DNA from: Rebecca billardiae RCC1528
Lineage: Eukaryota; Protista; Haptophyta
Reading direction: 5' to 3'
DNA: 64,000 nt
NCBI GenBank assembly: GCA_965240325.2
Contig: OZ251252.1
Location: 558,001-622,000, forward strand
The position numbers and the translations under genes were made by a program. Shown piece after piece: positions 25,650 to 39,701 of the stretch. Every line of letters begins with the position of its first letter. Position 1 is the first letter of the stretch. The notes under the pieces are model-generated. The model saw only the letters and a program-made list of their open reading frames with translations, was not told the DNA's origin and did no database searches.

Positions 25650-27860
25650 ATGGGCCGAGCAGGCGGCGCGGCGCTCTCAGCAGTCGAGATTAGCGCCGAG
25701 CTCGAGGCCAGTTTGAACGATGCGCGCGCCGTGCCCAACCTCGCTGCCCGCCGCTTCGCCATGCCTCTCCTCTTCACGGCCATCCTCCCCCTCGGCGTGT
25801 ACGTGGTCGACCTGATTGTCGTTGCGCACCAACGTGCCGTGCCGCTCTGGATGGCGAGTGTCGTGGACGACCACCTGTACGCTCGCGCGCAGGTGTACCG
25901 CTTCGTCGCGGCGCTTCTGTTCCCGCTCGCCGCCACGCTCCTACCGCCCTCCCACCTCTTCCTCGTGCGCATCCGCCTGCTCCTCGGCTCGTGCGCCTTT
26001 GCAATCGGAGCGGTGTTCACGTTCGTTCTGTGGCTTATGATCTCACGCGCGCCGCACGAGAGCCCCTCGCTCGCGATGCAGGCGTCCGTCGTCACACACG
26101 GGGTTGGAACAGTGCTCTTTTCCGCCGCCCTGTGCGCGAGCTGGCGCCGGCCGCGCCTCCTGCTCGAGCGCTTCCACAGCGCGTACGGCGTGTGGCTCGG
26201 TCTCGTGTGCGCGCGCGTATGCGCCGAGCACGCGCTGTGCCTGGGCGCGCCGCAGCTCGCGACGTCGATGGGGCTCGACGTGGTCGCTGCGAGACGCGCG
26301 TATGCACTCCGCCTGTCCACGTGCGCCGCGTCCCTGCTCGTCTCGGCGGCGTGCGTGCTGCCGCCCGTGCGCAACCGATGGCTGGCGTGCGTGATGCACC
26401 GCACGGGCACAAGTGGCACTCGCGCCGGGCTGGCGCCGCTGCTCGGCTTCGGGCTCGGGCTCGAGCTCGAGCCGCAGGAGCTCGTCGCCTGCACGCTCTC
26501 GCGTGTGCGCACGCACGTGCTGCACGACGTCGCCGCCACTGGCCTGTTCTCGCCGAGCGTCGAGCAGGCGAAGGCGGTTGCACTCGCGGCCCTGTCCCGC
26601 GACGGCACCGGCGCCTGCGGCGGCACGGCCGGCCATGGTGGCGCGCATCCGTGTGCGCCCCCGCCCGTCGGTCGCGCGCGAGCAGCTGCCATGGCTGCCA
26701 ACAGCTCGCTCCCCACCCTGTCCGCCCTCTCATCGCTCGGCGGCCGTGTGCGGTCCGCCCTGCACCGCGGTCCGGCCCCGGGAGCGGCCTCACCACCCAA
26801 GCACGCGCTGCCGCCGATGCCTGCCCGCCCGCCCGCCGCCGTGCCCGGCACAGCGCGCGCGGCCCCTAAGGCGCCGCACGCGTCCGACGCGCCCCAGGTG
26901 CCGCCGGCGGCGCCATGGGCACCGGGCCCTCCGCACGAACCCGACATCGACGCATCCGCCGTCGCCGCGCCGCCGATGCTCCGCCCCTCGCGCGCGCTGC
27001 GTGAGGTGAGCACCCCGCGCATCGATGCGTACGTGCTGCACTGCGCGCGCGATCCGTCGCAGCCCCGGCGACTCGCGCTGCTCGCGTGGGCCGCGAGCTT
27101 CGAGGCCCGCCACGGTCGGTGGCCGGTGATCGTACTCGACAGCGGCTGCCACGGGGCCGATCGAGACGATGCCTTCCACGCGCACCCGGACGCGCTCATC
27201 GCCGCCGAGGCTGCCGTGTGCTCACAGCGCGGCGCCCGCGCAGACGCGCGGCAACACAGCGGCGCCGCCAGCTACCGGCTCGCTCAGGTGCCCGTGCTGC
27301 TCGGCTGCAGCACACAGCTCGTCGTGCTCACCGGCCCGCGGCTGCTGCGGCTCGACATGCACATCCTGATGGTGCTGCACGTGTGGAGCGCGCTGGGCGG
27401 CGATCTCGACCACGTCCACTTCCTCCCGTCCGGCGTGAGCGCGCACAAGCTGCACCGGCTTGCGACGGCACTGGTCGGCGGCGTCGTCTCCGTGCTCCAC
27501 GCGCCGACGCCGCCGTCCCACGCGGAGGAGCGCGCGATCCTCGAAGCGGCCGAGCTGACCGGGCAGCTCGGCTTCGACGCGACGATCGCGGCCTATGCGC
27601 CGCGCGTGCTCGACGCGGCCGACAGGCTGCGCGCGCAAGGTGACGTCGACGACCAGAGCTCGAGCTCGGCAGCCTCGCCGCGCTCGCCGCTGCACGTGGC
27701 GTCACGCCTCACGGGGCTCTGGGCCGGGCGCCGTCACGGCATGCGTAGGCAGTGCGCGACGGTACACCCTGCGACGGCGGCTGACGCGGAGAGCGAGCCA
27801 GATTCCACGGGCATGCGCACGCGATGGCGCCCGGCACGTGCCGGGATGCAGACTGTTTGA
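25650..27860 (+). CDS. Multi-pass (~6 TM) membrane protein with degenerate C-terminal TIR-like domain
   Basis: About six hydrophobic segments and a Pro/Ala linker precede IDAYVLHCARD...LLAWAASFEARHGRWPVIVLDSGC...VPVLLGCSTQLVVLTGPRLLRL...VWSALGG. This follows the protist TIR-like pattern (F.SHSW.D / W.D..C / LP..L.GC..L..L.G..Y..RLWC..E), but the WCxxE is lost. Confidence 0.75.
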   Translation: MGRAGGAALSAVEISAELEASLNDARAVPNLAARRFAMPLLFTAILPLGVYVVDLIVVAHQRAVPLWMASVVDDHLYARAQVYRFVAALLFPLAATLLPPSHLFLVRIRLLLGSCAFAIGAVFTFVLWLMISRAPHESPSLAMQASVVTHGVGTVLFSAALCASWRRPRLLLERFHSAYGVWLGLVCARVCAEHALCLGAPQLATSMGLDVVAARRAYALRLSTCAASLLVSAACVLPPVRNRWLACVMHRTGTSGTRAGLAPLLGFGLGLELEPQELVACTLSRVRTHVLHDVAATGLFSPSVEQAKAVALAALSRDGTGACGGTAGHGGAHPCAPPPVGRARAAAMAANSSLPTLSALSSLGGRVRSALHRGPAPGAASPPKHALPPMPARPPAAVPGTARAAPKAPHASDAPQVPPAAPWAPGPPHEPDIDASAVAAPPMLRPSRALREVSTPRIDAYVLHCARDPSQPRRLALLAWAASFEARHGRWPVIVLDSGCHGADRDDAFHAHPDALIAAEAAVCSQRGARADARQHSGAASYRLAQVPVLLGCSTQLVVLTGPRLLRLDMHILMVLHVWSALGGDLDHVHFLPSGVSAHKLHRLATALVGGVVSVLHAPTPPSHAEERAILEAAELTGQLGFDATIAAYAPRVLDAADRLRAQGDVDDQSSSSAASPRSPLHVASRLTGLWAGRRHGMRRQCATVHPATAADAESEPDSTGMRTRWRPARAGMQTV

Positions 27861-30800: not shown

Positions 30801-32064
30801 TGCGTCCGCTGCGCGTCGTATGCCGTTGGCGCTGCGCTTCCGTCGCATTGGTCACCGTCGACGCCATGCACGGCGGACGTGGGCTTCGGCTGAGGGACCG
30901 GACCGCGAGCAATGACTGAGTCCGGTGCGCGGATTCCGGCGATCGAGTTCAGAAGGCCGCGCCAAATCTTGCGTCGCGTGCGATGGCGCTTCCCGCCCGC
31001 GAGACACCTCGTGATGAGGGCCTTTCCGCACCGAGCCCGACGCGCGACGGTGGATCGCGCGAGGTGGTTGTCGTGCGCAGTGCTTGATGCCATGGCCGTG
31101 CGAGCGCTCGACGTGCAAGTCAGGCGAGGACCGCCCCAGGTCGCACGATCGTGTCGACGCGCCGAGCGTACCTCCAAACGCGTCGACTTTGGCCCCCGTT
31201 CGACCTGCACGCGAGACGACGAGGGCAGCAATCGCGAATCGGGCGAAAACTCGTCTAGGGAATCCTCGCGCGATGTCCCCGCCGGCGTTGGATCTGGCGC
31301 GCGCGGCCCACGCGCTCCGCGCCGTGACGCACTCGCTTTTCGGCCGAGCGTCCCCAGTGGTCAGAGCTGCGAGGGTGCCCGGTGGTGAGCGACGCGATTT
31401 TCTTTTCTTTGCGAGGCGATTTTCTTTTTTCTTTTTCTTTTTCTTATCTTTTTCCCGGGCACTACCTACCGGGGCGGACCTACCGGTAATCAGGAGACCC
31501 GCGTCGTCCGCCTACCTGCGTCGTTAAATCATAGAATAATGGGTACGGCCCGCACCGTATGACCATTCATGAAAGGGAACGAATATTCGGCTGTATGATG
31601 ATCGCAAAGCGCGGAGCAACCCCACTTTTGATGACGATGCGCGGCCAAGGGGCAAGGGCAAATACAAGGGGGTTCACTTGATGCGGCCGCATCACAGGAT
31701 CAAGGCGGCTTGATAATGAACAGGATTCACAGCGTTGGCGGCGGTACAAATCACAGCAAGATTCATCAGCAATCGAAGAGGTTCGAAGGTCAGGAGCCTT
31801 GCGACTTCCAGACTATCACGGTGCGCGCGCCCATTGGGCCAACGACGACGACAGGGGATTATAATTGGTCCGGGGCAGGCGCGCAAGAGAATCCGACTGA
31901 ATCTAGGATCCGAAACGTGTTAAATGAGTTGCACTGAACAGCAAAGCCTGAAAGGCAAGCCTTCCTTGCCCGCTCTTTCCGCCGGACGAGGACTTTCCTT
32001 AGCTTTTCACGCTCAGGGTGCGACGATAAGATGGGAGCGTAGGCGTGCCCTGTCCTGGAGGCGC

Positions 32065-35000
32065 ATGTCCCGGGCCGGATCGCCCCTCGCCATTGTGCTG
32101 GCGTGGGCGGCGCTCGCCGGGTGTACGAGCGCGGCGTCGGGCGTGGGCGAGCTTCGCGTGGGCCCGACGACGTTTGCCGCCGCCTTCTTTGATTTCAGCG
32201 CGGCGGGCGCGCGCGTGCGCGGGCCGCTCGTGCTCGTCGGCCAGGCCAACCTCACGACCGAGGTGGATGGCGTGCGGCGCTGCCCGCCCGCATGGACGGG
32301 CGCCTCGCCGCCCGAGCAGGTACTGGCGGGTGCGCTCGTCGTGCACGTCGACCCGAGCGTCGCCTGCTCGCCCGAGCAGACGGCGCGCGCGATGCGAGCG
32401 CACGGCGCCGCCGCCTGGCTGAGCTTCCGGACCGCGGTCGCGCGCGCCGACGGCGTGCCGGGCGAGGAGAGCGGCGAGTGGCGACCCGGCGACGCGCGCT
32501 CGCTCGACATGCCGAGCGCGGACATCTCGGGCGCCGACACCGAGCGCCTGCTCATCGCCCGCCTCCGCGCCGCCGTGCCGCCGCCGCACGCCGAGCTGGC
32601 GACGACGCCGCCCGGGGCGCCTGGCGCCGCGCGGCGCATGCTCACCGGCGCGCTCGCGTGGAGATGGCCGCTGTGGCTCGTGCGCGCGCTGCTGCTGGTG
32701 CTGCCCGCGTGCCTGCTCGTCGCGGAGAAGCTGGTCATGCGCATCGGCACCCTCTTCGACTGGGCCACGCCTCGCGCGCGCGTGTGCCCGCACGGCGCGC
32801 TGCGGATGGCGGCGGTGGCGACTGCGCTCTGCGCGCTGCGCTCGGTGTGCCGGCCGAGTCGCGTGCTGCCGATGCCGGCGCGCGTGCTCGGGGCCTCGCT
32901 CGAGCACGCGTGCGTCGCGATCGCCATCACCCTCTTCAGCTGCCACTTCCTGCGCACCGCGCGCACCGCCGGCCTCCCGCCCGCGCCGATGCGGGCCTCG
33001 TCCCTCGCCGTGAAGCTTGCGGGCGCGCTGACGATCGGGCTGGCGCTGTGCGCGGTCGGCGTGGCGGCGACGGCGTTCCACTCGGCGTGGGACGAGGAGC
33101 TGCGCGACCTGCACCGCACGCTCACCCACGCCGTCCTCCCCGTCGCCGAGCTCACCGTCTTCGCCCTCGCGCACCTGTCTGTGCGACTGCTCGCCGGGTG
33201 CGCGGGTGTCCCCTTCAGTCCCCTCTTCTACCGGATCGGCACGCACGTGCGCGCGGCGGTGGTGCTCAGCGCGCTCGCGACGGCGGCGGACGTGGCGCAC
33301 GCGTACTACGGCCGGGGCCCGTGGCGCGCGCTCGCGTTCGCCACCGTCGCCGACCTCGCCAACCTCGGCGTGCTGTACACGATTGCAGACGCGCTCGCGG
33401 GCGTGCACTACCCGTCGCGCGTCGGGCCTTTGCACCGAGCGCTGCGCGCGCTGAGGAGGCGGAGCGCGGCGTCGGGCGCGCAGGAGTGCGCGCAGGGGCG
33501 GCTCCGGCTGGCGAGCGCGGCGTCGAGGGTACGCGGCCGGCTCAGCCTCCGCGGCCGTCCGCACGCGCGCAGAGCGATGCTGGCCGACCAGTTGGAGCGT
33601 GGCGCCGCGGGCGGCACCTCCTGTCCCACCTCCTCCGCCGCGCAGCTCGAGCTCGCGGCGGTGGCGGAGGGTGGGCGGGGGCCGGGGGCGGGCTCGGCGG
33701 AGGCGGGGGCGCTCGCCGGGTCGGTGCGCGCGGCGCAGCCCGAGCAGCAGCAGCCGGCGGAGCTCGGGGCAGGAGCGGCCTACCCCGCGGCCGACGCGCG
33801 GCCGACGCAGTCGCAGCCGCAGTCGCCGCAGCAGCAGCAGCAGCCGCTGCCGCGGCCGGAGCGGCAGCCGCAGCCGCCGGTGGCACAGCCGCCGGAGCCA
33901 GCGGTGCTACCGGAGGCGGAGCAGGCGGACGAGGAGGCGGCCGTGCACCTGCCGCCGCACCTGCACCTCGGCGTCAGCCTCGTCTTCCTACGAGACTTTG
34001 CGCGGCGGTACGGCTTTGCAGAGGACGCGTCGTCGCACGCGATGCGCGAGCTCGTGTGTGCCATCACGCGCAGCTCGCTGCGCTCGATGGCGGAGTGCCT
34101 GATCGAGGACCGGCTGCCAGGGGGCGAGCCCGTCGTGGGGATCGCGACGGTCTTCGTCTCGCACGCGCACCAGTGCGGCTACCGCCGCATGCTCGACGCG
34201 GTCGACTCGTACGTGCAGATGCACGCGCTCGACCCGCGCCGCACGTACGTGTGGCTCGACATCTTCTCGATCAGGTGCGGAGCCCGAGCCCTGATACCCT
34301 CGCCCTCACCCGAACCTACGCGCCGGGCGCGGGCTGCGCCGGGTGTGGACCGGAGGGCCGCGTGGACTGGGTGGGGGCCGCGCCGAGTGCGGGGGCAGCA
34401 TGCTCGCGCGCGCGCACTGGCACGCCGCGACGCGCGCGCGCGCGCTGTCGCGCCGTCGCGCCGGGGCAAGGCAGCCAGGCGGGACGGGGCGGGGCGGGGC
34501 GAATGCGGCTTGCCGGCTCACTCGGAAGTCGCGACGGCGCGCGGCCGCGCGCTCGAGCCCGCCCGCGCGGCCTGGCCCCGCCGACCGTGCCGCGCCCCGC
34601 CCGCCCTCACGCCGCCCGACCGCGCGCCCTCCCGCGCCGTGGCCCGCGCCCCACAGGCAGCACATGGTGCAGTACGACATCGCGCTGGTTGGCCACGTGG
34701 AGCACTCGATCGGCCGCGTGGTGATGGTGCTCGACCCGTGGGATAAGCCCGTCTGCCTCAGCCGCGTGTGGTGCGCCGCGCCGCCCGCCAGCCGCGCCGC
34801 CCGCTGCCCGCCACGCCGCTTGCAGCTCACTCACCATCGCACCGCGCGCGCGCGCGCCGTCTCCCCCGCTCTCTCCCTCTCTCTCTCTCGCGCGCGCGCG
34901 CACCGCTGCCGCCGCTGCCTGTGCGCAGGTGTCTCTACGAGCTGGTGCACTCGCTGCACCCGGAGGTGGACCTCGACCTCACGGTGCCGCCTGCAGAGCG

Positions 35001-35241
35001 CGCGCGCTTCGTCAAGGCGCTGCACAACGACCCGTGCCGCGTGCAGCAGATGCTCACCACGTTCGACGCGCGCGACGCGCAAGTCACCGTCGACGCGGAC
35101 CGCGACCTGATCCTGCAGATGATCGCCAGCACCTTTGGGGGCATCTATGAGGGCGACGACGACGGGATTGAGTACTTCAACCAGGAGACGCGCCTCGCCA
35201 TCCACGATGCGCTCGCGGCGTTCTCGTGGCAGCTCTTCTGA
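32065..35241 (+). CDS. Signal peptide + PA (protease-associated) domain + 7TM + cytoplasmic TIR-like domain receptor, 3 exons
   Basis: Signal MSRAGSPLAIVLAWAALAGC; PA-like LAGALVVHVD..ACSPEQTARAMRAHGAAAWL...MPSADISGAD; seven hydrophobic segments; Gln/Pro linker; TIR-like VFVSHAH...YVWLDIFSIR|QH...VVMVLDPWDKPVCLSRVW|CLYE. Introns 34275-34656 and 34771-34928 (GT-AG) keep the frame to TGA at 35241. Confidence 0.8.
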
Positions 35242-36077
35242 GGCACGGCGCGCCTGGGCGAGACGCCCCGCGCCGCCGCGGCCGCCCGCGCTGCGTTGGG
35301 CGCGCTCGCAGCCGGCGCGCTCTCGTAGCTCTGGCGGATGCGCTGCTATGGACGACGACGGCGTGACGACGACGACCACGACGGCCGGACGCGCGATCGC
35401 CACTCTGCTCATCATCGGCGGCGCCGGTGGTGTGGTGATGCTGATGGCGTGCTGGTAGTCGGCGCGCGATACGGGCTGAGCGCCGGCGGCGGCGGCGGCG
35501 CGCCGGGTGCCTTCGCGTCTCGGACGACTCGACGCGTCGGACGACCACGAAAGGCCAGTGCGCCAGCTTCATTTCCGAGCAGTGCAGCAGTCGGTCAACG
35601 CCAGGCCGCTACTGTAGCGTGACGAGCGGCGTCGTCGATCATCAGCGCGCAGGCAGAGTAGTCGTCGTCATCGGAGTCAGCGCACATCTGTATGGCGTCA
35701 CGCCGTCGTACACGTAGACGTTATTATTATATATAATTTATATATTATTATTATTATGATTATTATATTTAAAAACCAAATATGAAATATATTATATATA
35801 ATAATATATTACCGCCGGTGGCCGCGCGATATGCGACAATGACGCATGAACGCCGAACGCGTCGGACGACGACACTGACGACAGTATCAGTCGTCTGTGA
35901 CACTGACAGCAGTCCGCCTGCAGTCCTAGGACCCAGCCCCAGACCCATCAGTCTGCCCCGCGTCCCGCGTCCGCCCGTCCGTAACGGTGAGGCCGCCACG
36001 GCCGACTCAGGGCGTCAGGCCTGCGGTGTGACGTACTGATGACGATCATGCGGGCGGGGCTCGCGAAGTGCACGGCG

Positions 36078-36962
36078 TCAACGCGCTCGGCGGAGCGATG
36101 CACGAGCCTCCGCCAGCCAGTCCGCGCCGAGCGCCGAGCGCTCGTCGCACGTGAACGGCACGGTGAGCGCCGTGCGCACGCCTCGGCGCACCTGGCGCAC
36201 GCGGTGCGGGTTCTCGCTCCCAGAGGTGAGGAGCAGGAGCTGGCCGCGCTGCGGCCGGATGAGCGTGGGCGGCTCGGCGGCGCGGCCCCGCGGCGGCGCG
36301 AGCTCGAACTCGCCGCCCGCGAACTCGTCGCCGTGGTCCGAGAGGTAGAGCAGTCCGGTGAACGTGAAGGTGCCATACTGCTTCGTGTCGATATGCTCGT
36401 GCCAGTACTCGTCGTGCTGCGTGACCGCCGGCCTCGAGGCGTTGAGCCGGGACCAGAAGGTCGGCTTGGTCAGCCGCAGGCCGCGGCTGCCGAACGCGTC
36501 CGAGGCCGCGCCGCGGATCCGCTCGTACACGCGCTCGAGGACGTCGAGCTCCGCGCCCGTCGCGATCGGCGGCGCGCGAGTCGAGTTGAGAAGTGCAAAG
36601 ACAGAGACGAACTTGTCGCCGAGCGAGAGCGCTCCGGACTCGAGGTCGAGGATAGTGGGCCCGCCAGCACCGCCGCCGTGCGCCATGCCACGGTCGGCGA
36701 TCGCGCGGAGTGCGGCCACCTCGTCCGCCGACGCGAACCCGCCGATGACGACGTGGCCGCACGTGCGCGGCCGGCACGCCTCCGCCATGCGCTCATAGTC
36801 TGCGCTGCACGCGCGCGGGACGATGGCTGGCGCGGATGGCGCGCCACTCCAGCGGCGCCATCCGAAGGCTGCCGCCGCGGCGAGGACGCCCACGCCGACG
36901 AGCCTCGAGCCTGGCACGCGCGGACCGACGGGTTGGTGCTTCCGCTTGGCTCTCGGCGGCAT
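36078..36962 (-). CDS. OGFOD3: 2-oxoglutarate/Fe(II)-dependent oxygenase OGFOD3-like
   Basis: KPTFWSRL...HDEYWHEHIDTKQYG.F.FT.LLYLSD...F.GG.F...SGSENPHRV...G.R.ALT, giving the HxD...H triad. N-terminal TM. Confidence 0.85.
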   Translation of the reverse strand: MPPRAKRKHQPVGPRVPGSRLVGVGVLAAAAAFGWRRWSGAPSAPAIVPRACSADYERMAEACRPRTCGHVVIGGFASADEVAALRAIADRGMAHGGGAGGPTILDLESGALSLGDKFVSVFALLNSTRAPPIATGAELDVLERVYERIRGAASDAFGSRGLRLTKPTFWSRLNASRPAVTQHDEYWHEHIDTKQYGTFTFTGLLYLSDHGDEFAGGEFELAPPRGRAAEPPTLIRPQRGQLLLLTSGSENPHRVRQVRRGVRTALTVPFTCDERSALGADWLAEARASLRRAR

Positions 36963-37124
36963 GGTGAGCAGCAAGGCCGGCCGGACGCGAGGCAGGACGA
37001 AGGAACTCCCCCGCAGCCTTGTGAAGCAGCAGGACGGTGGGCGTTGCAGCGCCACCGGCCGGCGCGTGCCGCGTCGTCGATCCCAAGATTCTCGCACGCA
37101 CGTGGCCCCGGCCGAGCGTTCGCC

Positions 37125-39701
37125 ATGGAGCTCCCGAGCGACCCCGCGGCGATGAGCAAGAAGGAGAAGATCGAGTACATGCAGGCGAACGGCGACGAGG
37201 CGTTCCTCGACAAGTACAAGCTCAAGGGCCAGGCGAAGAACCTCGCCAAGGCGCTCAAGCAGCCCGCTGTCGACAAGGCGTTCGATGAGCTTGTGAACGG
37301 CCCGGCGCGCGCCGCCGCCGCCGCGGCCGAGGCGGCGCGTGCCGCGGCGGAGAAGGCGGAGGCCGACGCGTCCGCCGCGGCGAAGCTCGCGGACGAGCGC
37401 GCCGCGCGCCGCGCGCTCCAGCTGGAGGAGGCCGCCGCCAAGGCCGCCGCGGACGAGCGCGCCGCTCGGCGTGAGGACGCGCAGTACGGTCAGCGCGTCA
37501 CGGCGGAGCGGATCGCTCGGCTGCGCGCGGAGCGCGAGGAGGAGATGCGCCGGCGCGCGGAGCTCGGCGCCGAGGCGCGCTCGGCCACACAGCCCGCCGC
37601 CGAGGTCGGCATCGCGCGCCTGCCCCACGAGGCGCTCGCGCACGTCGCGACGTTCCTGCCTCCCACCTGTCGGCTCGCGTTCGGTGCCGCGTGCGCGCGG
37701 CTGCGCGCGGCCGTGGTGCTCGAGCCGCGGCTGTGGGAGGAGATCGACATGTCGGCGCTGCCGGCGGGGGCGCAGCAGACGGACGAGGCGCTGCGCACGC
37801 TCGCGGCCCTCGCGCAGGGCGGCCTGCGCGCGCTGCGCGCCACCGACTGCCCTCGGCTCTCGCGCGGCGCGGTCGCTGGCGTCGCGCTGGCGTCGATCAC
37901 TCTGCGGGAGCTGCGCGCGGTGGGCGTCGGCGACGGCACGGCGTGGTCGGTGGAGCAGCTCGAGACGGTGCGCGCGGGGTGCGCCTCGCTGCGCGTCCTC
38001 GAGCTCGACGTGTGGGTCGAGCGGCTCACCGACGCGGCGGCCGCACAGCTCCTGAGCGAGGCGACGGCGGCCCGCGCCGACGGCGCGCCCGCGGCCTGCG
38101 CCAACGGAGCGGAGAGCGACGACTGTGGCGGAGGCGCGCTCGAGCTGCTGCTCGCGGGGCTGACGGTGCGCAACGTGGACGCGGCGGACGTGGGCGCGCT
38201 GCACGCTGTCCTCGGCCCGAGCGGCGCGCTCCGCGCCCTCGTCCTCGAGGGCTCGAGCGCACACCAGCTCGGGCCGACGGGCGGTGCTACGCTCGCAGCC
38301 GCCATCAACCGCGGCGGAGCCGGCGCGCTCACTCGGCTGGACTGCCCGCGGGGGTACATGCTTGACGAGGGCGTGGCGGCGCTGGCGGGCGCGCTGGGCG
38401 AGGCGCGGTCGCTGCGCACGCTCGCGCTCGCGTCGAACGCCGTGCGCGCGCCCGCGATGGAGGCGCTTGCCAGCTGGCTCTGCGCACCGAGCGGCGGCGC
38501 CGCCGCCGAGCGCGGCTGCTCGCTGCGCACGCTCGACCTCCGGTATAACGAAGTGGGCGCGGTGGGCGCGCCGCACGTGGGCACGGTGCTGCGCGGCTGC
38601 GCCAGCCTCACCGAGCTCGACCTGCGATTCAACGGCATCGATAACCACGGCATCGTCCAGCTCGCCGCGGGCCTCGCCGACAACGCCACGCTCACCCGCC
38701 TCGACCTCACGGGCAACCTGTGCCAGATCGGCGGCGGTGAGGCCCTCGGCGACGCGCTGAGTCGGAACCGCGCGCTCACCGCGCTCGAGCTCGACTCGAA
38801 CCGGCTGACGGCGAAGGGCGCGGCGGCGATCGCGGGCGGGCTGATGAAGAACGGCACGCTGCGCCGCCTCTCCGTCGGCGGCAACGGCGTCAAGGCCGGC
38901 GCCAAGAAGTTCGCCTCAGCCCTACAGGTGAACTCCACCCTCCAGCATCTCGAGCTCGGCTCCAACGGCATTGACGACGACGGCTGCGACGAGCTCGCGT
39001 GGATGCTGGCGGCGAACGGCACGCTGACGCACCTGGCACGCGCGGCCGCGCGGCGCGGGGCGCGCGCGCGCGCGGCGCCCGAGCCCGCCGCTGCGCGCCC
39101 GCGCACCCGGCGCGCGCGCGGCCGGCCGGCGTCGCTCACTCCGCCCCTCCCCGCGCCCCGCGCCCCCGACCGCCGCCGCGCGCTGTGCCTGCTGCCCCCA
39201 CCCGGCTCACTGGCGGCGCGGCGCGCAGGACCTGTCGCGGAACGACCTGACGGACGAGTGCTGCGAGGAGCTGGCGGACGCGCTGCGCTCCAACGCGACG
39301 CTCACGTCGCTAGACATGGCGACCTGCCGCATCGCCGACGCGGGCGGCGAGCAGCTGGCCAGCGCCGTCCAAGTGCGCGCGCGGCGCACGCGGGCCACAC
39401 CGACCTGCCCTCCGCGCGCGGCCGCGAGTGCGCACGCGCAAGCGCGGCGCGCCGTCGTGGTTTGCTGCTGAGCGCGCCCCTGCCCCGCCACTCCCCCGCC
39501 ACGGGCGTCGGCGCCGCACGCACGCAGGAGAACACCACGCTGCGCTCGCTCGACCTGACGCAGAACGTGATGAGCCCGCTCTTCGTCACGAAGCGCATGC
39601 ACGGCCCGTCGCTCAGGGCGCGCGTGCGCGCGTCCTTCCAGCGCGCGCCCGTGGATGACGACGAGGGCGGGGAGGAGGCCGCGGCTGCCGGCACTGACTA
39701 G
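37125..39701 (+). CDS. F-box + RI-type leucine-rich repeat protein, 3 exons (first intron GC-AG)
   Basis: F-box IARLPHEALAHVATFL...C..LR....LW, followed by many LxxLxLxxNxI repeats. Introns 39036-39228 (GC...AG) and 39373-39527 restore the LRR exon DLSRNDLTDECCEELADAL... Confidence 0.85.
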   Translation: MELPSDPAAMSKKEKIEYMQANGDEAFLDKYKLKGQAKNLAKALKQPAVDKAFDELVNGPARAAAAAAEAARAAAEKAEADASAAAKLADERAARRALQLEEAAAKAAADERAARREDAQYGQRVTAERIARLRAEREEEMRRRAELGAEARSATQPAAEVGIARLPHEALAHVATFLPPTCRLAFGAACARLRAAVVLEPRLWEEIDMSALPAGAQQTDEALRTLAALAQGGLRALRATDCPRLSRGAVAGVALASITLRELRAVGVGDGTAWSVEQLETVRAGCASLRVLELDVWVERLTDAAAAQLLSEATAARADGAPAACANGAESDDCGGGALELLLAGLTVRNVDAADVGALHAVLGPSGALRALVLEGSSAHQLGPTGGATLAAAINRGGAGALTRLDCPRGYMLDEGVAALAGALGEARSLRTLALASNAVRAPAMEALASWLCAPSGGAAAERGCSLRTLDLRYNEVGAVGAPHVGTVLRGCASLTELDLRFNGIDNHGIVQLAAGLADNATLTRLDLTGNLCQIGGGEALGDALSRNRALTALELDSNRLTAKGAAAIAGGLMKNGTLRRLSVGGNGVKAGAKKFASALQVNSTLQHLELGSNGIDDDGCDELAWMLAANGTLTHLARAAARRGARARAAPEPAAARPRTRRARGRPASLTPPLPAPRAPDRRRALCLLPPPGSLAARRAGPVAERPDGRVLRGAGGRAALQRDAHVARHGDLPHRRRGRRAAGQRRPSARAAHAGHTDLPSARGRECARASAARRRGLLLSAPLPRHSPATGVGAARTQENTTLRSLDLTQNVMSPLFVTKRMHGPSLRARVRASFQRAPVDDDEGGEEAAAAGTD

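Follow-up and report, generated by a model that had tools for sequence, protein, structure and literature searches.

A candidate single-chain receptor of the haptophyte Rebecca billardiae with a PA-fold ectodomain, a GPCR-fold bundle and a HET-like domain of the TIR superfamily

At the locus described here, three exons make up an intact gene of Rebecca billardiae RCC1528, which encodes a membrane receptor of 878 aa. The gene lies in a window of 64,000 nucleotides (contig OZ251252.1, positions 558,001 to 622,000), which is the whole stretch of DNA that was analysed and to which all coordinates below refer. From the N-terminus onward, the protein is composed of a predicted, cleavable signal peptide, an extracytosolic PA domain, a GPCR-fold bundle, a disordered cytoplasmic linker and a HET-like domain of the TIR superfamily, and we consider this reading, together with the mechanism that we infer from it, to be quite probable. 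The gene belongs to an expanded multigene family of Pavlovales haptophytes (Diacronema lutheri and relatives), and its whole architecture is common to at least 27 other clusters defined at 50% identity.

Gene structure and splicing

Three exons on the forward strand, at 32065-34274, 34657-34770 and 34929-35241, join into an ORF of 2637 nt that encodes 878 aa. The parts of the gene are as follows.

32065-34274, + strand: exon 1, residues 1-736 and 2 nt of codon 737; it holds the signal peptide, the PA-like ectodomain, the 7TM bundle, the linker and the first half of the HET/TIR-like domain
34275-34656, + strand: intron 1, 382 nt, GT...AG, phase 2
34657-34770, + strand: exon 2, IGRVVMVLDPWDKPVCLSRV, which covers the region of helix B and strand C and ends two nt into the W775 codon
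34771-34928, + strand: intron 2, 158 nt, GT...AG, phase 2
34929-35241, + strand: exon 3, which completes W775 and holds C-L-Y-E779, the rest of the TIR-like core and, before the stop, a helical extension at the C-terminus

A six-frame search with the HMM of the C-terminal-domain family returned exactly three pieces, which abut at the proposed junctions.

33910-34278: HMM positions 2-124, score 163.5
34655-34795: HMM positions 123-169, score 53.4
34924-35238: HMM positions 160-264, score 102.5, reaching the stop

Residues 614-877 of the spliced protein form an unbroken alignment with many relatives. The NCBI-annotated D. lutheri protein KAG8459293.1 aligns straight through both junctions, and P0020 is aligned across both with 51% identity over residues 635-874. 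Since the three pieces abut and spliced relatives align through them, both splice junctions are supported by homology. The sequence-only reading of this DNA had proposed two GT-AG introns and a single polypeptide, with a WCLYE motif split by intron 2 and therefore hidden among the ORFs. Both proposals hold: the ORF is clean, homology supports the junctions 34274/34657 and 34770/34929, and the codon of W775 is divided TG/G by intron 2, with WCLYE kept across the junction in the homologous alignments.

Exon 2 by itself aligns gaplessly to P0120 and P0003. Exon 1 ends at a splice donor reading GTGCGG at 34275, and a simple repeat occupies 34842-34908 inside intron 2. In the genomic sequences of several relatives the gene calls stop at a matching HMM position (~116-130), a break that fits, as indirect evidence only, a shared intron 1 site. 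At the other end of the gene, the HMM of the N-terminal family spans 32173-33438 within exon 1, and the start Met is identical in the gene call on the contig of a second strain (P0001). The allele of that strain differs from ours at 10 sites in exon 1, of which 7 are synonymous and 3 non-synonymous, with neither frameshift nor stop; exons 2 and 3 are identical between the two strains. A search for RNA runs over 33900-35300 found none. The one run found for exon 1, of unknown kind (0.05 share of sampled words), yielded five very small contig pieces on the gene, none of them with a joint.

Ectodomain, seven-helix bundle and linker

Four features precede the C-terminal domain.

32065-32142, + strand: predicted signal peptide, residues ~1-26, MSRAGSPLAIVLAWAALAGCTSAAS
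32143-32604, + strand: PA (protease-associated)-fold ectodomain, residues ~27-180
32668-33393, + strand: seven-helix TM bundle, from the AlphaFold (AF2) model
33445-33903, + strand: low-complexity cytoplasmic linker, residues ~461-613, 153 aa, rich in A/R/Q/P/G

Residues 1-460 of the protein itself were modelled with AF2 (pLDDT 85.8, pTM 0.85), and this model contains the signal peptide, the PA-like ectodomain and the seven helices that had been read from the sequence. A hydrophobic peak at residues 4-28 and, in the model, a helix of low confidence at 5-18 in front of the ectodomain mark the predicted signal peptide, and the relatives in alignment A2 begin at the same position. The ectodomain is modelled mostly with pLDDT >90 and carries two Cys, C73 and C101, that are nearly invariant among relatives. 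When it was compared with the PDB by Foldseek, the top matches were the PA ectodomains of ZNRF3/RNF43, with a probability of 1.00, E values of 5e-4 to 1e-2 and a TM by target between 0.5 and 0.66; further matches were to the PA domains of aminopeptidases and of the transferrin receptor. Pfam PA (PF02225) gives no match in the window protein and is weakly matched by seven relatives out of 27, the best at E 2.6e-4; P0069, for example, reaches 20.3 bits and stays below the cut-off of 23.9. As modelled, then, the N-terminal ectodomain has the PA fold.

The bundle that follows consists of exactly seven helices in the model, at residues 202-233, 237-262, 270-301, 311-337, 343-380, 386-415 and 419-443. 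Its best VIA-align score is Z 18.4, to P2Y14 over ~245 residues, and scores to P2Y14, CB1, P2Y12 and others range from 16.9 to 18.4; these exceed the level of 13 below which caution is advised for helical bundles, at identities to GPCRs of 5-13%. The best 50 entries are all GPCRs except for two de novo designed GPCR-like folds, and the modelled bundle can accordingly be assigned the GPCR fold. Read by eye, the sequence shows neither a DRY following helix 3 nor an NPxxY within helix 7, and the absence of these class A motifs leaves G-protein coupling unsupported. Combined PA and multi-TM regions also occur in SPPL2-type (signal-peptide-peptidase-like) proteases. That assignment was rejected, as the model has seven helices of GPCR fold rather than nine and none of the YD, GxGD and PAL motifs was seen, again by eye.

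In the ESM Atlas, the nearest clusters by features are hypothetical proteins with a PA domain and 7TM, followed by THH1/TOM1-3, GPR137_N and TPRA1. The first group comprises PA-7TM proteins of Endomyxa and Zoopagomycota in which the whole N-terminal module is matched (feature score 0.95), and a structural search matches these stand-alone proteins at a TM of 0.69 over residues 27-460. Judged from their length of 460-610 aa alone, the Endomyxa and Zoopagomycota proteins probably lack the HET/TIR-like domain.

A signal peptide followed by seven helices places the C-terminus in the cytosol, in agreement with the earlier expectation, and the predicted cytosolic position of the C-terminal domain is derived from this topology. 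The positive-inside bias is weak (13 vs 10 K+R). The linker, first described as rich in Gln and Pro, is present with a broader composition; it falls outside both family HMMs, and a Pfam search of residues 461-619 (window 33445-33921) found nothing, even at E 10.

The C-terminal domain within the TIR superfamily

The C-terminal domain is ~265 aa long (residues ~614-878) and begins in exon 1.

33904-34274, + strand: HET/TIR-like domain, part 1, with the N-terminal helical extension, strand A, helix A and strand B

Strand A carries FVSH, with H700, and strand B carries W730-L-D732. The motifs from which a TIR domain had first been recognised are all present, as VFVSHAH (696-702), VWLDIFS (729-735) and WCLYE, the last within RVWCLYE (773-779). 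They coincide with the consensus blocks FVSHA, YxWxDxFxxRQH and RxWCLxE of a domain family with 118 representative relatives at E <= 1e-3. Every one of the 52 aligned relatives of this family has the W and E of W-x-x-x-E, here W775 and E779, and conservation is at least 90% for each of H, W, D, P, P, L and R. Thirty positions are conserved at 75% or more; 28 of them are identical in our protein, and the other two are swapped conservatively (T to S, F to Y).

The family is poorly visible to sequence profiles. Pfam finds no match at E <= 10 in the window's own exon pieces, and no relative tested reaches the threshold of Pfam TIR or TIR_2 (PF01582 / PF13676) or of HET (PF06985). HET and TIR_2 are nevertheless the only Pfam families matched repeatedly among the 52 relatives, both below threshold: TIR_2 in three (best E 0.0076) and HET, the family matched most often, in five (best E 0.0032). 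Scores to HET are 13.7 bits for P0012, 14.2 bits for P0061 and 11.8 bits for P0025, against a curated threshold of 22.5 bits, and HMMER aligns HET on block 2 alone (HET profile positions 35-75), in a consistent register in three relatives. Scanning 20 further relatives singly with Pfam added one HET match and no TIR_2 match. Against PDB sequences the family profile found no TIR, and only chance helical matches. Word-based protein searches brought up P0001, P0002 and P0003 alone, almost nothing apart from the allele of the gene itself, and the family profile added nothing new.

At the level of structure the relationship is clearer. The C-terminal model was built on the 51%-identical homologue P0020 (pLDDT 96.8), which stands in for the window's spliced sequence; Pfam, the atlas, structure prediction and fold search together covered the exon pieces, residues 1-460 and P0020. 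VIA-align places this model at Z 7.0-7.6 to the TIR domains of SARM1, RPP1, RPPT, AbTir and SpbK over ~115-130 residues, a range that the tool calls 'middling', with ~120 of 242 residues superposed and identities of 10-16%. In an unbiased search of the PDB (48,161 chains), 28 representative chains had Z >= 5, and bar a few uncharacterised entries these were TIR, ThsB or nucleoside 2-deoxyribosyltransferase folds. A viral structure library gave no significant match, the best again being a TIR protein, at E 0.02. The modelled domain thus has the flavodoxin-like alpha/beta TIR fold that the sequence-only reading had anticipated, and in the model the conserved W and E sit on the helix after strand C, with E779 as a putative catalytic Glu on helix C. 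What stands of the earlier TIR assignment is this fold and the conserved W and Glu; what falls is a canonical TIR domain, given the sub-threshold Pfam TIR and HET matches and the length of ~265 aa. The label 'TIR' is therefore right at the level of fold and superfamily only.

Fungal HET domains, the cell-death domains known from heterokaryon incompatibility and from NLR-like HET-NACHT-WD40/TPR proteins, share with our family the link to TPR-type repeats. Presumably the HET blocks A-L-S-Y-x-W, W-I-D-x-x-C-I-N-Q and R-x-W-x-x-Q-E correspond to F-V-S-H-A, W-x-D-x-F-x-x-R-Q and R-x-W-C-L-x-E here, a resemblance that we treat as a lead only. Unlike in HET proteins, the domain here stands C-terminal to a 7TM region or, in other members tested, N-terminal to TPRs without NACHT or NB-ARC, and it is longer by ~60 helical residues at the N-terminal end and by ~80 at the C-terminal end. 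HET has been described as remotely homologous to TIR, with the functional Glu retained and with relatives in haptophytes, stramenopiles, choanoflagellates and green algae (PMC4986451, PMC9153377).

Enzymatic TIRs, such as SARM1, the plant TNL and TIR-only proteins RPS4/RPP1/RUN1 and the bacterial AbTir/ThsB/SPARTA, have the core alpha/beta TIR fold in common with our domain. The wording W-C-L-x-E is also, we take it, the same as that of plant TIRs. However, the domain here is nearly twice as long, matches no Pfam TIR or TIR_2 at threshold and stays at Z <= 7.6. It stands at roughly equal distance from fungal HET and from TIR, and is best described as an extended HET-like branch of the TIR superfamily, forming an unnamed family.

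This domain family occurs in haptophytes, dinoflagellates, chlorophytes, oomycetes, chytrids and choanoflagellates, and in many protists the domain is fused, at the N-terminal side, to TPR repeats. Within the window, an upstream ORF at 25650-27857 was considered as a paralogue of the receptor and rejected, as neither family HMM matches it and it has no Pfam match; look-alikes in the atlas make a distant TIR-like domain in this ORF possible.

Possible mechanism, alternatives and significance

With this architecture in mind, one may propose how the receptor works. A ligand bound by the PA domain or by the 7TM pocket would change the conformation or the clustering of the receptor, and this change would bring the cytoplasmic TIR-like domains into association. 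The associated domains may then cleave NAD+ or a related nucleotide by means of the invariant Glu, as SARM1, plant and bacterial TIRs and TeTIR do; alternatively, their output may be the recruitment of partner proteins with the same domain. Such a receptor would probably serve to recognise microbes, viruses or non-self. Both its gating by a ligand and its signalling, as an NADase or of cADPR type, are inferred only. In its full form, the proposal is a G-protein-independent one-component system, existing in dozens of paralogues, in which a PA-headed receptor of GPCR fold switches on an attached HET/TIR-like nucleotide-cleaving enzyme, and in this form we put it forward tentatively, as one possibility.

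Several known systems offer partial precedents. In the same phylum, membrane TIR proteins of Gephyrocapsa huxleyi combine an extracellular region or multiple TM segments with an intracellular TIR-type domain that has the conserved Glu; induction of these genes comes early in infection, within 0.5 h after the virus is added, and their products were proposed as receptor-like signal generators (PMC12489294). Unlike the domain studied here, these TIRs are defined by HHsuite matches to canonical TIR Pfam families; the example described there has a single TM helix and EGF-like or leucine-binding-like ectodomains, and the main text describes neither a PA domain nor a seven-helix GPCR fold (PMC12489294). 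The TeTIR (TEP1-extended TIR) of TEP1, NWD1, NWD2 and NPHP3, a Glu-dependent NADase of 200-350 aa (bioRxiv 10.64898/2026.09.21.753143), is a precedent for an extended TIR-like domain that had escaped recognition, and it is likewise tied to TPR or WD40 repeats. TeTIR, however, always lies directly upstream of a NACHT ATPase, and none was seen here. Toll-like and IL-1 receptors also carry an extracellular sensor and a cytoplasmic TIR-type domain on one chain, but they are single-pass proteins with LRR or Ig ectodomains, whereas a PA domain and a GPCR-fold seven-helix bundle are found here. The sequence-only reading knew of no characterised protein of this architecture. The receptor is less singular than first thought, as it has many paralogues in a multigene family of Pavlovales and membrane-anchored TIR proteins were already reported in a haptophyte in 2025 (PMC12489294).

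The same architecture could also work by assembly alone. The HET/TIR-like domain would then be a non-enzymatic adaptor that, once the receptor is activated, nucleates homotypic assemblies with soluble proteins containing the same domain, for instance together with TPRs. Animal TLR/MyD88 TIRs would be a parallel, as would the role of adaptor that Dyrka et al. first suggested for HET (PMC4986451). The many TPR proteins with the domain at their N-terminus are possible partners, and in the literature searched no enzymatic activity is reported for HET-type domains. Against an adaptor stands the W-x-x-x-E that none of the 52 aligned relatives has lost, a pattern that one would sooner expect of a catalytic site than of an interface. 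Animal adaptor TIRs, by comparison, often lack the Glu. Catalytic activity is reported even for animal immune TIRs in a 2026 preprint (10.64898/2026.04.20.719644), and on balance we regard the purely adaptor role as rather unlikely.

An endomembrane sorting or trafficking receptor, or a GPCR proper, appears improbable. On this view the ligands of the PA domain would be cargo or peptides, as they are for vacuolar sorting receptors, RMR or ZNRF3, and the C-terminal domain would be a regulatory tail only, leaving the receptor without a direct link to a TIR enzyme. PA domains do occur in sorting receptors and E3 ligases. The atlas places the 7TM region near THH1/TOM1-3, GPR137 and TPRA1, which are largely endomembrane families, but at scores to named 7TM families of only 0.66-0.71, so that these are leads only. 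UniRef names the D. lutheri relative KAG8460825.1 (P0070) an 'RGS domain-containing protein', yet this protein has no Pfam RGS match even at E 10, and an RGS domain was rejected. The C-terminal domain is the best conserved part of the family and is found independently in other architectures, and it thus behaves as an effector module rather than as a tail. That the gene is unexpressed or a decaying paralogue, and the model a computational construct, is very improbable: the single run shows no joints, and the gene is one of many paralogues in a family that may turn over quickly, but the 878 codons are intact, the conserved positions are kept or conservatively swapped, homology supports both junctions, and the two strains differ in exon 1 mainly at synonymous sites with the frame open.

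TIR-type domains are common to the innate immunity of bacteria, plants and animals. Little is known of the way in which unicellular algae detect viruses and microbes, and the gene provides a concrete and testable receptor candidate, with a GPCR-fold seven-helix protein and a TIR-superfamily effector on the same chain and a family expanded in Pavlovales. The effector comes from a large domain family without a Pfam model, lying between fungal HET and TIR. If the proposal is true, cleavage of NAD+ by the invariant Glu would bear on the long-open question of HET biochemistry, and a HET-type domain would for the first time be assigned an enzymatic function. Haptophytes would then have a pathway leading from the cell surface to NAD+, or to a messenger like the cADPR isomers, in response to pathogens, viruses or non-self.

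Structure of the fusion gene

Joining reading frames across two introns yields a clean 2637-nt ORF on the + strand that encodes a single polypeptide of 878 aa, as the sequence-only reading had proposed. The motifs it quoted are all in the protein (VFVSHAH at 696-702, VWLDIFS at 729-735, and WCLYE within RVWCLYE at 773-779), and the codon of W775 is interrupted by intron 2, which thus splits the last of them.

Exons of the fusion gene, from ORF joining, and matches of the profile (HMM) of its C-terminal domain family
32065-34274, + strand, exon 1
34657-34770, + strand, exon 2
34929-35241, + strand, exon 3
33910-34278, + strand, HMM positions 2-124
34655-34795, + strand, HMM positions 123-169
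34924-35238, + strand, HMM positions 160-264

GC content is ~75% across the gene and ~54% immediately up- and downstream, in a window of high-GC eukaryotic DNA. The frame is open upstream as far as a Met at 31924. We prefer the Met at 32065 because GC content drops upstream of ~32000, because the gene called on the contig of a second strain (the allele P0001) begins at the equivalent Met, and because the alignment of relatives of the N-terminal module (A2) starts from that residue. Both introns have GTGCG at the 5' end and CAG at the 3' end, and the shared GTGCG may be a local 5' splice-site preference. A simple repeat lies within intron 2, at 34842-34908.

Homology to other predicted proteins supports both splice junctions. 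A phmmer search of 1.84 billion representative proteins, with the 117 aa of the domain that exon 1 encodes as query, found 118 relatives at E ≤ 1e-3, and residues 614-877 of the spliced protein align uninterrupted to many relatives, for example P0014, P0024, P0012 and P0020, the last with 51% identity over 635-874. When the whole window was translated in six frames, the C-terminal HMM matched exactly the three pieces listed, which abut at the proposed junctions, the last ending at the stop codon. An NCBI-annotated protein of Diacronema lutheri, KAG8459293.1 (P0120), aligns across both junctions, with WLDIFSIRQHMVQYDIALVGHVEHSIGRVVMVLDPWDKPVCLSRVWCLYELVHS of the window paired with WLDAVSIRQQNVEADVHLIGAIERKVRRVVMVLDPWDAPVCLTRVWCLFEVVHC. 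A search for RNA runs over the region listed none, and the single sequencing run found to contain exon 1 yielded five small contig pieces on the gene and no joints. Many unspliced genomic gene calls of relatives (e.g. P0004, P0007, P0013, P0017, P0023) stop at HMM positions ~116-130 or 160-170, which coincide with the two intron sites of the fusion gene, suggesting that these intron positions may be conserved across paralogues or species.

The second strain's contig, from another sequencing run, is 99.5% identical to the window over 4.6 kb. Within the gene there are 10 differing sites, all in exon 1 (7 synonymous, 3 non-synonymous), with exons 2-3 identical; in these small counts from two strains, this is a pattern of apparent purifying selection.

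Genes neighbouring the fusion gene
25650-27857, + strand, multi-TM ORF of 736 aa, just upstream
about 36081-36600, - strand, 2OG-Fe(II) oxygenase gene (Pfam PF13640), downstream
about 37100-39700, + strand, gene with BTHB, F-box-like and RNI-type LRR_6 matches in Pfam, downstream

The upstream ORF has no Pfam match, and it is ruled out as a paralogue of the fusion gene since neither the PA-7TM nor the HET/TIR-like family HMM matches it. In the atlas it resembles haptophyte hypothetical proteins that have TIR-type clusters among their structural neighbours, and a more remote TIR-like domain might be present in it. Gene calls for both downstream genes exist on the second strain's contig as well, and there is no sign of an operon-like link. 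A long + ORF starting at 36039 and overlapping the oxygenase gene is probably spurious over its first ~1 kb.

A PA ectodomain joined to a GPCR-like helical bundle

AlphaFold2, run on A2 (residues 1-460 of the window protein and 26 relatives), gave a confident model with pLDDT 85.8 and pTM 0.85, and its parts agree with the signal peptide, PA-like ectodomain and seven hydrophobic helices that had been read from the sequence. A low-confidence N-terminal helix at 5-18, within a hydrophobic peak at 4-28, is taken as a predicted signal peptide. It is followed by a beta/alpha domain at residues 27-180 and by long helices, exactly seven, within residues 202-443. In a Foldseek search of the PDB the top matches were the PA ectodomains of ZNRF3/RNF43 (E 5e-4 to 1e-2, TM by target 0.5-0.66), followed by PA domains of aminopeptidases and the transferrin receptor and then, for the helical part, by class A GPCRs. 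VIA-align placed P2Y14, CB1, P2Y12 and others at Z 16.9-18.4, above its own caution level for helical bundles, with ~245 residues aligned; the best 50 entries are GPCRs, save two de novo designed GPCR-like folds. Pfam PA has no match in the window protein itself, and matches weakly in 7 of 27 relatives (best E 2.6e-4). C73 and C101 of the ectodomain are nearly invariant in A2, consistent with an extracytosolic domain.

With a signal peptide, a PA domain on the outside and seven helices, the C-terminus would lie in the cytosol, as had been expected, and the loops show a weak bias towards the same topology (K+R 13 inside, 10 outside). The class A signatures DRY and NPxxY are not visible in the 7TM sequence, so "GPCR-like" describes the fold and not coupling to G proteins. 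Atlas look-alikes of the PA-7TM module (feature score 0.95; TM 0.69 over residues 27-460 in the structural search) suggest that it also occurs as stand-alone proteins of 460-610 aa in Endomyxa and Zoopagomycota.

The linker that follows, earlier described as a Gln/Pro linker, comprises residues 461-613. These are of low complexity and A/R/Q/P/G-rich; they lie outside the coverage of both family HMMs, and Pfam has no match in residues 461-619.

The C-terminal HET/TIR-like domain

In an alignment of 52 full-length C-terminal domains (A1), the consensus reads LGVS..FLR.F ... T..V...V...T ... G.P.VG.AT.FVSHA....F..LLDAL, then Y.W.D.F..RQH ... IG...LVLDPW..P..L.R.WCL.E, then D.R.A.A....D...I ... 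N..V..ALR.AL. No variation is seen at the W and E of WCLxE, and conservation is at least 90% at the H of SHA, at W and D in W.D, and at two Pro, a Leu and an Arg. At positions conserved at ≥ 75% the window protein is identical in 28 of 30, with a conservative replacement at each of the other two (T to S, F to Y).

The closest complete homologue of the window's domain, P0020, was modelled from A1 with pLDDT 96.8 and pTM 0.92. An N-terminal helical part (1-60) leads into strand A (FVSH), helix A, strand B (Y.W.D), helices, strand C (LVLDP), a helix with W143 and E147, strand D and a helical C-terminal extension. Against PDB and Swiss-Prot models Foldseek returned only weak E-values (0.03-1), with top ranks that are mostly TIRs (RPPT, SpbK, RUN1, SARM1, MAL, RPS4, BdTIR, plant TNLs); VIA-align to these reached Z 7.6 over 115-130 residues. 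An unbiased VIA search of 48,161 PDB representatives gave 28 chains at Z ≥ 5, which, save a few uncharacterised entries, have TIR, ThsB/TIR-like or nucleoside 2-deoxyribosyltransferase folds, groups that share one common fold and a catalytic Glu (bioRxiv 10.64898/2026.09.21.753143). Since the match list is uniform despite modest scores, we accept a TIR-type fold for the core, as predicted from the homologue P0020. Helix C of plant TIRs has the same W-x-x-x-E spacing and exactly the same W-C-L-x-E wording, and the spacing is identical in SARM1 (W638/E642) and AbTir (W204/E208). E779 is likely equivalent to the catalytic Glu of TIRs.

No Pfam model reaches threshold in this domain, in the window protein or in any relative tested. 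Only HET, the fungal heterokaryon incompatibility domain (5 of 52 members, best E 0.0032), and TIR_2 (3 of 52, best E 0.0076) matched more than once, both sub-threshold; the HET matches sit in consistent register on the W.D.F..RQ block, at HET profile positions 35-75. A search of PDB sequences with the family profile found nothing relevant.

Similar domains occur in other protein contexts. The P0020 model matched AlphaFold DB clusters over its full 240 residues (E 1e-15 to 1e-10, TM 0.7-0.87). Judged from their UniProt entry names, these include "TPR-like" proteins, "Mbre TPR repeat protein" entries of choanoflagellates, MalT-like TPR proteins of oomycetes, "kinesin light chain 3"-named proteins, and many uncharacterised or receptor-like proteins with EGF-like, Apple, ephrin-receptor-like or VSR-like parts. 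A shape search of the atlas gave a concordant picture, with oomycete TPR_12/TPR_10 proteins (TM 0.86-0.89) and clusters from Chlorophyta and Haptophyta, and the relatives scanned carry TPR_12, TPR_10 and NPHP3-type TPRs downstream of the domain. In one relative, P0109, the domain occurs together with TPRs and a cyclic-nucleotide (cNMP)-binding domain; P0055 (1239 aa) has three tandem HET/TIR-like domains, and P0064 (1807 aa) two, followed by NPHP3-type TPR repeats. This distribution agrees with Dyrka et al. 2014, who used PSI-BLAST to find HET relatives in stramenopiles, haptophytes, choanoflagellates, green algae and bryophytes, and who drew a remote HET-TIR link (PMC4986451); a functionally important Glu is kept in HET, according to Lapin et al. 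(PMC9153377).

Together with these reports, the fold, profile and distribution results lead us to the name HET/TIR-like. The "TIR domain" of the sequence-only reading stands as a member of the TIR fold superfamily with the invariant W and E, but not as a Pfam TIR; judged by sequence profiles, the domain is outside both Pfam TIR and Pfam HET as now defined.

A putative receptor family and its possible output

The N-terminal HMM shows that the fusion gene belongs to an expanded family, in which the domain order of the window protein recurs: 27 other representatives of 50%-identity clusters have a complete PA-7TM module ahead of the domain, and about 10 further ones are N-terminally cut. The named members are all "hypothetical proteins" of D. 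lutheri (KAG8459293.1, KAG8458467.1, KAG8460825.1), with a looser relative in Pavlovales sp. CCMP2436, so that a haptophyte of the Pavlovales is very probably the source of the window. Receptor-TIR fusions as a kind are already known from TLR/IL-1R and G. huxleyi proteins, and HET/TIR-like domains outside fungi have been known since 2014. In the literature searched we found no description of a PA ectodomain, a GPCR-fold seven-helix bundle and a HET/TIR-like domain in one protein, in line with the earlier impression of an uncharacterised architecture, and the effector domain family has no Pfam model.

The fusion protein is well supported as an architecture, and one may speculate on its mechanism. 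According to this speculation, a ligand would be bound by the PA or 7TM part, and the receptor would be activated via conformational change or clustering. The output could be Glu-dependent cleavage, with NAD+ or another nucleotide as substrate; alternatively, proteins with the same HET/TIR-like domain could be recruited homotypically. Three observations speak for catalysis. W and E are absolutely invariant. TeTIR (TEP1-extended TIR), another extended TIR-like family, sets a precedent, having turned out to be a Glu-dependent NADase (bioRxiv 10.64898/2026.09.21.753143). Finally, haptophyte TIR genes whose N-termini are extracellular or multi-TM, and which are induced 0.5 h after virus addition, have been proposed to encode signal-generating receptors (PMC12489294). 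Against catalysis, however, counts that no documented activity for any HET-type domain was found in the literature searched.

P0070 (KAG8460825.1 of D. lutheri, 1069 aa) has the PA-7TM and HET/TIR-like ends with an insert of ~250 aa between them. Its UniRef name is 'RGS domain-containing protein', and with a cut-off as loose as E 10 Pfam has no RGS match in the insert. An RGS domain there, if real, would connect the 7TM module with G-protein signalling.
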